A stretch of 64,000 nucleotides of DNA. Source: Oculina patagonica (taxonomy: Eukaryota). Below the pieces are notes generated by a model, which worked only from the letters and a program-made list of their open reading frames with translations, was not told the DNA's origin and ran no database searches. The stretch is from positions 6,758,001 to 6,822,000 of the forward strand of contig NC_135769.1 in the NCBI RefSeq assembly GCF_052425735.1. The letters run 5' to 3'. Each line of letters opens with the position of its first letter. Position 1 is the stretch's first letter. The translations under genes and the position numbers were made by a program. Positions 23,001-25,379 of this stretch are shown one piece after another.

Positions 23001-25379
23001 AGTGCGATTACTCAACTTGTTTGTCCGTAGAAAACAGTAAGAAACCTGTAATTTTCAAAACTTTAACCTTCAACAATAACAGTCTATCAAGAGTTTTTAA
23101 AACAAACCGTAACATAAACGTTCATGACAGTTCAGGTCCTCTTTATTTTCTCCATCCATTTTTTCAGATGATATTCCGAATGTAGAATCATCCGCCGATC
23201 CCAGTACATAGAAGTCTCACCCACGCATTTATCCACTGAGGGAGGTCAATTATGTAATGTTTAATAAATGAGCAGCAGTGTTTTATCAAGTTTAAAACAC
23301 GAGGCGCAGCCGAGTGTTTTAGACTTGATAAAACACGAACTGCGAATTTATTGAACGGCTTAAAAATCTTCTGATGTAGATCAACTCATTCTTGCACTAA
23401 TATTTAGATTTGGGGTTATTTTGGCCTAGAAGATTGGACGTAAAGTTTAGCCGTGTCTTTATCAGATATAAAGACACTCATTAAACATTAATTTCTTTTG
23501 TATTTTCTTTATGAATTATTAATGAGTTTTTTAAGGTCTTGAAAAAACGAGGCAACTCGCTTTCCCACGTGTTTTTTAAATCTGCCGCATGCTATGGTAA
23601 CCTTCGCATGCATCCTGATAAAAAAAATCGTGCGTATGTGCTCTAAATTTGGACCCGTTTTAGAAAGAATTTGCCCTAAATTTGATATAGTAACTAAGTC
23701 AGCCTTTTTATACCCCGTTGTAAACTAAAACGCACCGAACCATGCTCGTAAGCTAACGATGCGCAACACAGGGTGCAATAGTTTTAAATCGTACTTTTAA
23801 AAGCAATCTCTCATTGAATAATTTCAAATGGCTGCTTTCGTGCGTTTAAAATAGTGTACCCCGTTTTAGGAAACGTCTCTAAAATGGATACCCCGCTCTA
23901 ACTCAGGAGCTCCAAAATCACGACCCCGTTGGGCGGCAAATACCCGTATAGGTATTGTATGGGAGTAACCCCCCGGGGGTAATCTGCGCCTAACGGTTTA
24001 GTTAGTAAAGGGGATTGACCGTGATTGTGTAATCCGATAATCTATTGAAGTGATATCATATCACTGATGATATTATTACATTTAAGGTAGAATTCAGTTT
24101 CCCCCTGCTGTTATCCTCCCACTATTTTTTTATTATTATTATATATTTTATCTTTTTTGTTGTAAATATTTTTTGTAATGTTGGGAAATCCAAATAAATA
24201 AATAAAAAATAAATAAACTTGTATTACATTTACGGTTGGTCAGCTTATTACATTTAGCGTTGAATTGTATTACATTTACGGTGGGGTAAGTTATTACATT
24301 TAGGGTTGATTTTTATTACATTTGCAGTAAGTATTACATTTAGAGTTAATTTTTATTACATTTGCGGTTGGTATTACATTTAGCGTTGTTATTACATTTA
24401 GCGGTGATACAACCGGGGTTCTACTGTATATATAGATGCTGAAAACTCCTAAAAACGTTTACCTGTTGGCAACTCACCTACAAAGCAGACGCACACCCAA
24501 AAATCTAAAAATGGACTGTTCACAGGGAAATAATAAAAGAAACGTCCAAAAAGTATGTAGAGTTGTTACATTGACAACTCTTTACCTGATTTACAACCAT
24601 AGAAGTCAGCCCTCAATGCAACCCAAACGTAGTTGCTTATTGGATTGATTCGGATGTAGCGTGCAATTACAGGATTCTCCAGTTTGTGACTCACAACTGA
24701 GTATCGATCAGTATTCCCTTTAAATTCCTTAAATAAAACAAACAAATGATATCGCAATCATAATTAGACAATTCCCTTAAGAGACACAACATCATATGAG
24801 AACACAAGTTAAAAAATTACAAAACACAAACAATGCATTTTACTTAAAATAAAGTACCTTTACATAACCTCCTTCCGTATAGTCCCGAAAAAATCGTCCG
24901 TCATAACTATACGTCACACGGTAGTTTTTCACCCATCGGGCAGCATCTTCTCTTCCTTGAGTGGAAATTATCGTCACTTTAACAAAGCGTCCAAAATCCA
25001 CCTGAAACCAACCGTTTTCGCGCTTATTGCCAGCTATCCAGGCTCCATAGCGTCCAGAGGTACGCTTGAAATGAAGTCTTCCGTTTCCTGGCATATACCA
25101 GGTTGAACCTGGAGAATACGTGCTTGAGGCCGTGATCGAGGAGTCAGGAATGGCATAATTTTCCAATCCCAATCCTTCCTGACAAACAGGGGGCTGCGGA
25201 GTGGAAAACCCTGATAAAAAAATTGGGACGGTTTGCGTCATTTGCGTTGTCATTGACTATAAAAAGCTAAGTGGCTACTACAAACCTATTGTAGACGGAG
25301 TTTAGCTTTAAGTTATTTTGGGTCACCGGTTTTTGTTTGCATTCTTGATTTATATTTCTTCTTGTGATTGTCGTCGTCT

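Follow-up and report, generated by a model that had tools for sequence, protein, structure and literature searches.

Strand-coded hairpins at the ends of non-coding elements in Oculina patagonica and their association with Crypton-type tyrosine recombinase genes

Palindromes and elements of the window

The window considered here is a 64,000-nucleotide stretch of the Oculina patagonica genome (contig NC_135769.1, positions 6,758,001 to 6,822,000) of animal-like composition (38.5% GC; CpG observed/expected ratio of 0.95), in which long palindromes with differing arms share the design of their tips. The nearest relatives at the protein level are from corals and other marine invertebrates, and the stretch is present in sequencing runs labelled coral metagenome. 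These palindromes and the elements to which they belong fall into three families, here termed F1, F2 and F3 (Table 1), with a fourth, F4, being found elsewhere in the same genome. The palindromes are read here, with moderate confidence, as the terminal hairpins of Crypton-type DNA transposons, the copies in the window being the far more numerous gene-less derivatives of such transposons.

The original prediction, made from the letters of the window, listed five such tips, all of which were read from the window exactly as written. The common unit is, however, slightly bigger than described there, namely C-GA-stem-C·GNA·G-stem-GA-G, with a C:G pair lying outside the GA/GA mismatch and with C:G as the last pair of the inner stem. 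When the window was scanned with a descriptor neutral to this design (any triloop, an inner stem of 3-5 bp, any 2x2 loop and a perfect outer stem of at least 5 bp), four places were found, three of them of the C-GA/GNA design. With wobble pairs allowed, the descriptor returned 85 mostly weak hits that included all five apex sites; an outer stem of at least 8 bp was present in nine hits, five of which were these same sites.

Table 1. Features of the window discussed in the text (window positions), followed by places in the window's own genome (contig:position) where the apex 15-mer CGAGCCGTAGGCGAG lies close to a PF12012 match.
Feature	Position	Strand	Remarks
F1 target tetranucleotide TTAT	23250-23253	+	Directly 5' of F1; single in empty sites
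F1 element	23254-23534	+ (coded)	281 bp, non-coding; starts GTAATG, ends GAGTTTTTTAA
F1 terminal hairpin	23259-23356	+	Begins 5 nt inside the left end
F1 apex	23300-23314	+	C-GA-GGC-GCA-GCC-GA-G
F2 element	30262-31676	minus (coded)	1.4 kb, non-coding; minus-strand start GCAATAGAGG, end TTATTTTATAA
F2 terminal hairpin	31494-31678	minus	185 nt, arms of 91 nt
F2 apex	31579-31593	read on minus	C-GA-GAC-GCA-GTC-GA-G
TTAA at foot of F2 hairpin	31677-31680	minus	Invariant (28/28 unique copies); either target sequence or the element's own first four bases
First N run	39594-39725		
Second N run	41509-41680		
F3 hairpin, first copy of duplicated 5' module	53035-53151	+	
Apex of first copy	53087-53103	+	C-GA-GGCC-GTA-GGCC-GA-G
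F3 element	53237-53622	+	5' hairpin, then two tandem 3' end modules of ~84 bp each; 5' boundary +/- a few bases
F3 terminal hairpin	53240-53359	+	
F3 apex	53292-53308	+	C-GA-GGCC-GTA-GGCC-GA-G
Decayed F3-type copy	63205-63320	+	Apex kept; outer arms unfoldable (z -0.3)
Decayed F3-type apex	63252-63268	+	F3 apex with loop G changed to A (ATA instead of GTA)
CGAGCCGTAGGCGAG near PF12012	C13:22044702, C5:19581977, C5:2475371, C4:21529877, C1:8115379		
CGAGCCGTAGGCGAG near PF12012	C9:21797408, C5:18066913, C7:15008548, C12:10742563		
CGAGCCGTAGGCGAG near PF12012	C5:18611684, C5:12414354, C4:47588665, C13:23540468		

The palindromes had been put forward as stand-alone recognition sites. Palindromes they indeed are, although not free-standing ones, each lying 0-10 nt from the end of a high-copy, non-coding element. 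Copies of F1 in its own genome amount to more than 1000 first-look candidates of 98-100% identity, and in four sequencing runs, contig depth rises some 300-1000-fold exactly across the 281 bp of the element. For F2, more than 1800 first-look candidates of 90-98% identity were obtained; neither coding remnants nor an open reading frame above 68 amino acids was found within this element. Most F3 copies match window positions 53237-53538 (ending ..AATAATAA), with some reaching 53622 (ending ..AATTATAA), these two alternative ends being due to the two tandem 3' end modules of the element.

In what follows, loci labelled L002-L060 were cut from the window's own genome, and L062 and L066-L070 from other public assemblies. 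F4 was recognized in the flanks of the F1 copies at L017 (positions 1789-2112) and L005, in which no coding remnants were found, and occurs as at least 294 copies preceded by TTAA, a tetranucleotide that represents either target sequence or the initial four bases of F4 itself. At two loci that differ in both outer flanks, F1 is directly followed by F4, with the 616-bp composite being 96% identical between them; either the pair moved jointly, or F4 inserted at the end of an F1 copy on two occasions.

All four families have one and the same polarity. On the coded strand, i.e., that on which the GA mismatches are read, the hairpin lies 5', with its foot 0-10 nt from the start of the element, and a T-rich stretch followed by WAA (W being A or T) forms the 3' end, which reads GAGTTTTTTAA in F1, TTATTTTATAA in F2, about TTTTACAA in F4 and AATAATAA or AATTATAA in F3. 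The F2 hairpin, being last on the plus strand, is hence first on the minus, GA-coded strand. Terminal inverted repeats are absent from F1-F4; in particular, neither end is the other in inverted form, as would be the case in miniature elements of the Tourist, Stowaway or piggyBac-like TTAA types, which also duplicate a TA, TWA or TTAA target. The claim that the shared tip unites sequence-unrelated elements devoid of terminal inverted repeats was thereby upheld, and F1 was also found to lack the target-site duplication that the claim had supposed missing. The latter point follows from the older repeat within which the window copy of F1 sits. Three other copies of this repeat (L002, L003 and L006) are free of F1 and read ...GGTCAATTATGGTCTTG, whereas the filled site reads TTAT, then the 281 bp, then GGTCTTG. 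Since three paralogous empty sites could be compared with the filled site, F1 can be said to have inserted exactly, 3' of TTAT and with no target duplication.

The same empty sites ruled out models in which F1 would duplicate TTA/TAA or TTAA, as the empty site contains a single TTATG and the filled site TTAT...TTAA, such that duplication would call for an extra substitution. A joint skipping the 281 nt of F1 (GT..AA) was also present in contigs of all four sequencing runs, a joint that may come from paralogues and so is no independent proof of an empty allele. Across 25 unique insertions, the left flank of F1 was TTAT in 19 cases, TTAA in five and TTAC in one, while on the right, G was found at +1 in 14 and positions +9 to +12 were A-rich; no target duplication was seen in any of these 25 flank pairs. 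To the right of the junction, the target bears a loose resemblance to the beginning of F1, with G at +1, T at +5 and TAA at +9 to +11. Of 28 unique F2 insertions, 21 have A at -6, 19 have A at +1 and 26 have T at +8, and a target-site duplication in the form of a 3-bp TAA repeat is compatible with the data.

Should F1 move as an excised circle, a junction joining ...TTTTTTAA to GTAATG... would be expected. Head-to-tail F1-F1 junctions were considered as a sign of tandem integration and dropped, given that only one exists in the whole genome, which provides no evidence of circles. Some 60 nt before its 3' end, F1 also contains a perfect 10-bp hairpin, GTGTCTTTAT-CAG-ATAAAGACAC (window positions 23453-23475), the loop of which is not of the GNA type. 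In F2, part of the hairpin arm (about 28 nt, CCGTGTTTACATA..CTCATCTAAAC) is present a third time, in direct orientation, some 50 nt from the other end of that element (window positions 30262-30360, minus strand), where it adjoins GTGACGTCAC, a CRE-like palindrome; a second site of protein binding may lie here.

A strand-specific code in unrelated stems

The GA/GA mismatch had been assigned to the tip. The shared tip itself was confirmed, yet the design is not confined to the apex, as the tandem 2x2 purine loops found along the stems are also GA/GA and are read on the same strand. Thus, the F1 hairpin contains, in addition to its C-GCA-G end loop, T-GA-G/C-GA-A, CA/GAA and C-GA-G/C-GA-G loops; that of F2, read on the minus strand, contains three C-GA-G/C-GA-G blocks, single G·A and C·T mismatches and a C-GCA-G end loop; that of F3 contains C-GA-A/T-GA-G, GC/AA and C-GA-G/C-GA-G loops beneath a C-GTA-G end loop; and that of F4 contains two GA/GA blocks, one GGA/GGA block and a C-GACA-G tetraloop.

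To these were added Crypton tails (see below), giving ten folded hairpins in which every loop was tallied on the coded strand. The tally yielded 19 GA/GA 2x2 loops, each of the 19 in a Y-GA-R context (C-GA-G, T-GA-G or C-GA-A, with Y and R being pyrimidine and purine), and no TC/TC loop in any of the ten. Three GC/AA loops, conserved inside the F3 group, and a few single mismatches, foremost G·A, completed the set. End loops were C-GCA-G, C-GTA-G, C-GAA-G and C-GACA-G, with two of the Crypton tails having larger, degenerate tips. The complementary strand would instead present T·C mismatches and pyrimidine loops.

Both building blocks are known from oligonucleotide work, where the CGAG block comprises a C:G pair, two tandem sheared G·A pairs and a G:C pair (PMC10085684) and where d(GNA) loops are exceptionally stable, gaining a further 2-3 kcal/mol when closed by C:G (PMC3201870). 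Of the earlier claim that only one strand can fold, the strand-specific code was confirmed, whereas folding on one strand only rests on such published nuclear magnetic resonance and thermodynamic work. Nearest-neighbour folding proved uninformative as proof of strand specificity: energies of the two strands were -31.1 and -27.6 kcal/mol for F1 and -82.3 and -78.9 kcal/mol for F2, with a slight difference in the reverse direction for F3, in a model that contains no term for sheared G·A pairs.

The distribution of the apex was next considered by counting pattern matches across the 529-Mb genome, with the same pattern reversed serving as control. The pattern CGAGNCGNAGNCGAG was matched 2890 times, as compared with 37 control matches; CGAGYCGNAGRCGAG, from which the inner stems of F1 and F2 are excluded, 325 times (control: 7); CGAGNNCGNAGNNCGAG, with a 4-bp inner stem, 2378 times (control: 225); and CGAGNCGNNAGNCGAG, with a GNNA tetraloop, 1436 times (control: 47), all counts being of copies rather than independent origins and so inflated by transposon copy number. 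Among the matches listed, inner stems used all four pair types, loops were GCA, GAA, GTA and GGA, and inner N pairs were Watson-Crick in about 93 of 100, in keeping with the covariation of the short stems that had been reported from the window. Because the inner stems are so varied, many lineages must carry the design.

The arms were compared as well. Those of F1-F4 could not be aligned, with local-alignment z scores of 0-2 relative to shuffled sequences, whereas a positive control, namely F3 and a relative in another assembly, gave a z score of 6; the families first described as unrelated are accordingly not a single homologous family. Between F3 and this relative, compensatory changes were seen in the stems (GGCC to GCGC; AGCCAAC/GTTGGCT to AACCAAC/GTTGGTT), amid which the GA, GTA and GC/AA loops were unchanged.

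These observations leave a negligible place for chance or mutational artefact, by which quasi-palindromes would have come to share a tip by accident. Although copy number does swell the raw counts, the apex exceeds its controls 10- to 80-fold, an excess in line with the original prediction, and still stands at 325 versus 7 once the inner stems of F1 and F2 are set aside. Moreover, 19 GA/GA loops are faced by zero TC/TC loops, polarity is constant in every family, and the stem changes between assemblies are compensatory. At the same time, not every palindrome of this genome carries the code. L025 contains a perfect palindrome (positions 1-371), free of mismatches, each arm of which spans 184 nt or more and which runs past the start of the locus, showing that long palindromes lacking the G·A code exist in the genome as well.

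Variation among F2 copies provides another view of the hairpin. Nucleotide diversity in 29 copies was 0.014 in the hairpin as compared with 0.044 in the remainder of the element; the copies were picked by similarity to a hairpin-containing query, although the interior columns covered by that query still gave 0.025-0.049. In one copy (L050), the central 19 nt are flipped, such flips being seen in 1 of 29 F2 copies and in none of 27 F1 copies, and in another (L054), one GA was changed to TC in a single step, perfecting the stem. Both changes fit what intrastrand templating would be expected to produce.

The same variation bears on the possibility, considered rather unlikely, that no strand ever folds and that the palindrome is instead an inverted array of recombinase-binding sites in duplex DNA, with the CGAG tetramers serving as directional marks. 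Tyrosine recombinases generally bind inverted duplex sites, in duplex form the CGAG tetramers are direct repeats within inverted arms, concerted evolution would also be expected of binding-site copies in inverted orientation and would mimic covariation, the folding model gives the two strands similar energies, and the extended target preferences (T at +8 in 26/28 for F2; A-rich +9 to +12 for F1) look as if read from a duplex. Yet the arms, 28-91 nt in length, are unrelated across families, such that the only binding sequence they share would be CGAG and the tip, and the inner stems of 3-4 bp vary freely while remaining complementary. The Y-GA-R mismatches and the C:G-closed GNA or GNNA tips are, furthermore, known stabilizers of single-strand folds (PMC10085684, PMC3201870), and the F2 copies with a one-step GA to TC change and a flipped tip fit intrastrand templating.

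Association with DUF3504-type recombinase genes

The original prediction had suggested that the palindromes might be tied to Crypton or other tyrosine recombinase genes, and coded hairpins were indeed found to be physically linked to genes of the DUF3504 type. In the window's own genome, 150 matches to PF12012 (DUF3504) were scored from 309 candidates, all above the curated cut-off, many in uninterrupted frames of 420-585 amino acids and several with identical scores, the last pointing to young multi-copy families. The apex 15-mer CGAGCCGTAGGCGAG occurs 114 times in this genome, as compared with zero control occurrences. At 13 places (Table 1), it lies on the opposite strand some 770 bp (range, 733-858 bp) past the C-terminal end of a PF12012 match, and two further pairs of the same orientation, at distances of 1.7 and 2.2 kb, bring the total to at least 15 places, where chance would provide about 0.04. 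As a separate observation, two DUF3504-type frames of 420 and 416 amino acids lie head to head some 3.1 kb apart, an arrangement that is repeated at two loci (G000:C4:21530659-21534630 and C1296:54919-58889).

Relatives in other assemblies provide the anatomy of the gene-carrying form. L062 contains a decayed DUF3504-type gene (PF12012, 1.6e-6 and 28.7 bits against a cut-off of 29.7; PF00589, 9.5e-6; QRICH1, 8e-5) in which the recombinase motifs HCLRA...GHRS...ESY are present, followed by a DIRS-like insertion and then by an F3-like coded hairpin on the opposite strand. L069 and L070 present the same unit without the interruption, with a gene that matches PF00589 and, weakly, PF12012. Homology between L069 and L062 extends over L069 positions 3392-5400 and stops at the foot of the hairpin (positions 5278-5397); these bounds define a 2.0-kb mobile unit with room for a recombinase gene only and with the hairpin at its end. 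No reverse transcriptase, such as would mark a DIRS/Ngaro element, was found in this bounded unit, in which the recombinase gene stands alone, nor was target duplication seen in the L069 and L062 flanks. The opposite end of the L069 unit, read on the coded strand, is ...AATATACTAA, in agreement with the ...WAA rule.

In L066 and L067, gene products match both PF12012 and PF00589, and the L066 gene, as well as both L067 genes, has a coded hairpin 0.3-0.4 kb downstream on the opposite strand. The first L067 hairpin comprises three GA/GA blocks and a C-GAA-G tip; the two L067 genes themselves are arranged in tandem, with one hairpin each. Overall, gene-carrying relatives have the hairpin 0.3-0.8 kb downstream of the recombinase frame, with the coded strand being the non-coding strand of the gene. 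The F3 hairpin shares 70% identity over 81 nt with the Crypton tail of L062, with no match at the other end.

The F3 palindrome is accordingly very probably the end hairpin of a Crypton-type element, and it is likely that the hairpins of F1, F2 and F4 are as well. Several points nonetheless weigh against the overall assignment. Only F3 has a hairpin with apparent homology to a Crypton tail, and over 81 nt only, with F1, F2 and F4 presumably belonging here by their shared design and polarity. No autonomous, gene-carrying partner of F1, F2 or F4 was found, and a pattern joining an F2-type hairpin to a different interior had zero matches in the own genome. Several own-genome DUF3504 frames have no apex nearby, as judged for a single apex sequence among 100 of the 114 CGAGCCGTAGGCGAG places, and at L068, itself a Crypton-type locus, no coded hairpin was found within 4 kb. 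One of the two Crypton copies compared, L069 and L062, has a flank that does not end in TTAW, and the precise terminus is ambiguous in F2, in F4 and in the F3/Crypton family, where TTAA may be target or element. As for the fold, the nearest-neighbour model rates both strands about equal, and tyrosine recombinases normally act on duplex DNA.

One apparent partner was rejected. A PF00589 recombinase beside an F1 copy (L009, positions 3-1010) is DIRS-like, since four of its relatives have an upstream RVT_1 gene and, downstream, an inverted repeat of 67-86 nt; in a fifth relative, no reverse transcriptase was called, yet the same inverted-repeat tail is present. No coded hairpins were found in these DIRS-like loci. 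The tail at L009 (positions 3-1503; G000:C13:28921954-28925239) comprises a 336-residue recombinase frame and an inverted repeat with arms of 86 nt and a spacer of 256 nt, and the F1 copy was inserted one base past this repeat, after TTAT. The same recombinase-plus-inverted-repeat tail was found in L064, while L062 instead features a 47-nt palindrome together with terminal inverted repeats that are short.

The association with recombinase genes also speaks to the nature of the enzyme. The original prediction had allowed for an HUH (Rep-type) nuclease acting in rolling-circle or peel-and-paste manner, as in Helitron2, IS91 or IS200/IS605, with the hairpin as origin or terminator. The absence of target duplication, the tetranucleotide at one end only with a hairpin adjoining an end, and the resemblance of the F1-F4 composite and of the alternative 3' ends of F3 to terminator read-through would all suit such an enzyme. 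It is, however, quite improbable, given that coded hairpins lie at a fixed distance from DUF3504-type frames and end a 2.0-kb unit with space for a recombinase gene only, and that the long hairpin is found at one end only. No Rep or helicase gene was called in the five recombinase-bearing loci, a search of these loci rather than a genome-wide RepHel search near coded hairpins. Nor do the ends have 5'-TC, CTRR-3' or the asymmetric terminal inverted repeats known from Helitron2 (PMC3627910). Helitron and Helitron2 elements are further recognized by a RepHel gene, a 5' TC or T and a short hairpin placed 10-30 nt from the 3' end. Reading the uncoded strand as Helitron or Helitron2 was rejected as well, as the ends, TTAAAAAAC...CATTAC in F1 and TTATAAAAT...CTATTGC in F2, do not fit.

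Since the recombinase frame is followed by the hairpin and some RNA runs contain part of the window, a role at the RNA level was also weighed, with the hairpin being a 3' structure of the recombinase transcript or a small-RNA precursor and the DNA code a by-product. This is highly improbable, as the sense transcript would bear the uncoded U·C version, the mobile unit still terminates in the hairpin in gene-less derivatives, and polarity follows the insertion junction and not any promoter.

Apart from these elements, the window contains a retrotransposon reverse-transcriptase frame with a weak RVT_1 match (6610-8268) and a second such frame that, by eye and with no Pfam match, resembles the C-terminal part of an element lacking long terminal repeats and adjoins a masked N run (38397-39449). 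Flanking the second N run are two frames that encode F5/8 type C (discoidin) domains and are probably host-gene exons (41820-43325). Among the 60 frames taken from the flanks of F1 and F2 copies or from the window, one matches PF20706 (family 4 glycosyltransferase of conflict systems) at 7.9e-55.

Folded-strand recombination and known systems

If the hairpins do mark Crypton ends, then the code may be read on a folded strand. The coded strand, unpaired as in replication or extruded as part of a cruciform, would snap into a hairpin, with the G·A blocks and the GNA tip stabilizing the fold on that strand only. The fold would tell the recombinase where the element ends and which way round it lies, and strand exchange would occur at the foot of the hairpin. 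With the similar ...TAA end of the element as partner, exchange would lead to excision to a circle; with a TTAW-like target as partner, it would lead to integration. Perhaps only one strand pair is exchanged, followed by replication. Beyond the anatomy, polarity and linkage described above, we infer folding in vivo, recognition of the fold by the recombinase and single-strand exchange. Whether a folded-strand mechanism operates at all is finely balanced; the broader proposal, that animal Cryptons recombine via a folded single strand with the hairpin being a portable, structure-defined site read on one strand by the recombinase, is offered more tentatively still, as possible though somewhat doubtful.

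To our knowledge, no class of eukaryotic DNA transposons is less well understood than Cryptons, and we know of no Crypton transposition reaction that has been reconstituted. The coded terminal hairpin offers a structural handle with which to find and delimit Cryptons and their thousands of gene-less derivatives, as well as a defined biochemical substrate, in the form of the coded strand, its complement or the duplex, with the code intact or mutated. It also leads to a concrete hypothesis, namely that a tyrosine recombinase of eukaryotes works on folded single-stranded DNA, a practice that we know of only from bacterial systems. Were this so, the hairpin would be the equivalent, in eukaryotes, of integron attC or of CTX-phage integration, and folded-strand recombination would explain both the featureless appearance of Crypton ends and the presence of one design and polarity across unrelated families. 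A structure-defined recombination site active in animal cells would, in addition, be of practical interest as a tool.

Cryptons are said to have been described by Goodwin in 2003 as DNA transposons that encode a tyrosine recombinase. By this definition, the gene-carrying relatives, which encode such an enzyme, are Cryptons, while the window elements themselves are non-coding. The likeness extends to the tyrosine recombinase as the only enzyme and to the absence of terminal inverted repeats and target duplication (PMC3212892), to non-autonomous derivatives that outnumber gene-carrying copies and to a recombinase that matches Crypton-derived DUF3504. In their survey, Kojima and Jurka (2011) reported short direct repeats in fungal and oomycete Cryptons and no terminal repeats, direct or inverted, in those of animals, with palindromes and hairpins never being mentioned (PMC3212892). 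Where that survey describes featureless animal ends, one long, conserved, strand-coded hairpin is described here. No paper on hairpin-type end structure in Cryptons was found in the literature searched, which excluded Repbase reports and most subscription journals.

The IS200/IS605 group (IS608) and Helitron or Helitron2 elements also have strand-specific subterminal hairpins and insert beside a short target without duplicating it. They differ in relying on HUH nucleases and in having either a short hairpin at each end or, ahead of CTRR-3', a GC hairpin that is likewise short, in contrast to the single long hairpin and the associated tyrosine recombinase gene seen here. Closer in terms of the enzyme is CTX phage, in which the attP(+) site, a folded single-stranded hairpin, is integrated by XerCD through exchange of one strand pair, with the product being resolved by replication. 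In that case, however, a phage genome employs a host recombinase by mimicking the host dif site, and no G·A code is involved.

With regard to the fold itself, oligonucleotides containing CGAG and d(GNA) present blocks identical to those of the hairpins, namely C:G, tandem sheared G·A, G:C and a C:G-closed GNA loop (PMC10085684, PMC3201870), although such blocks are familiar from oligonucleotides and as motifs of promoters or centromeres and, in the literature searched, were not described at a transposon end. Finally, integron attC sites, according to two published accounts, are defined by structure, have a bottom strand marked by unpaired features and are acted upon by IntI, a tyrosine recombinase (PMC2727003, PMC5027507). 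The attC sites are bacterial, go together with an IntI integrase located beside an attI site, and are marked by extrahelical bases and an unpaired spacer, in contrast to the G·A blocks and GNA tips that serve as unpaired features in the present animal host, and no R''-L''/L'-R' boxes were found in the coded hairpins. Folded-strand recombination, moreover, is proven for attC and proposed here, such that the relation is one of functional analogy only. Within that analogy, the two have in common a site located 3' of the gene, a mark on the non-coding strand and a crossover that is placed, here by proposal, at the foot of the hairpin.

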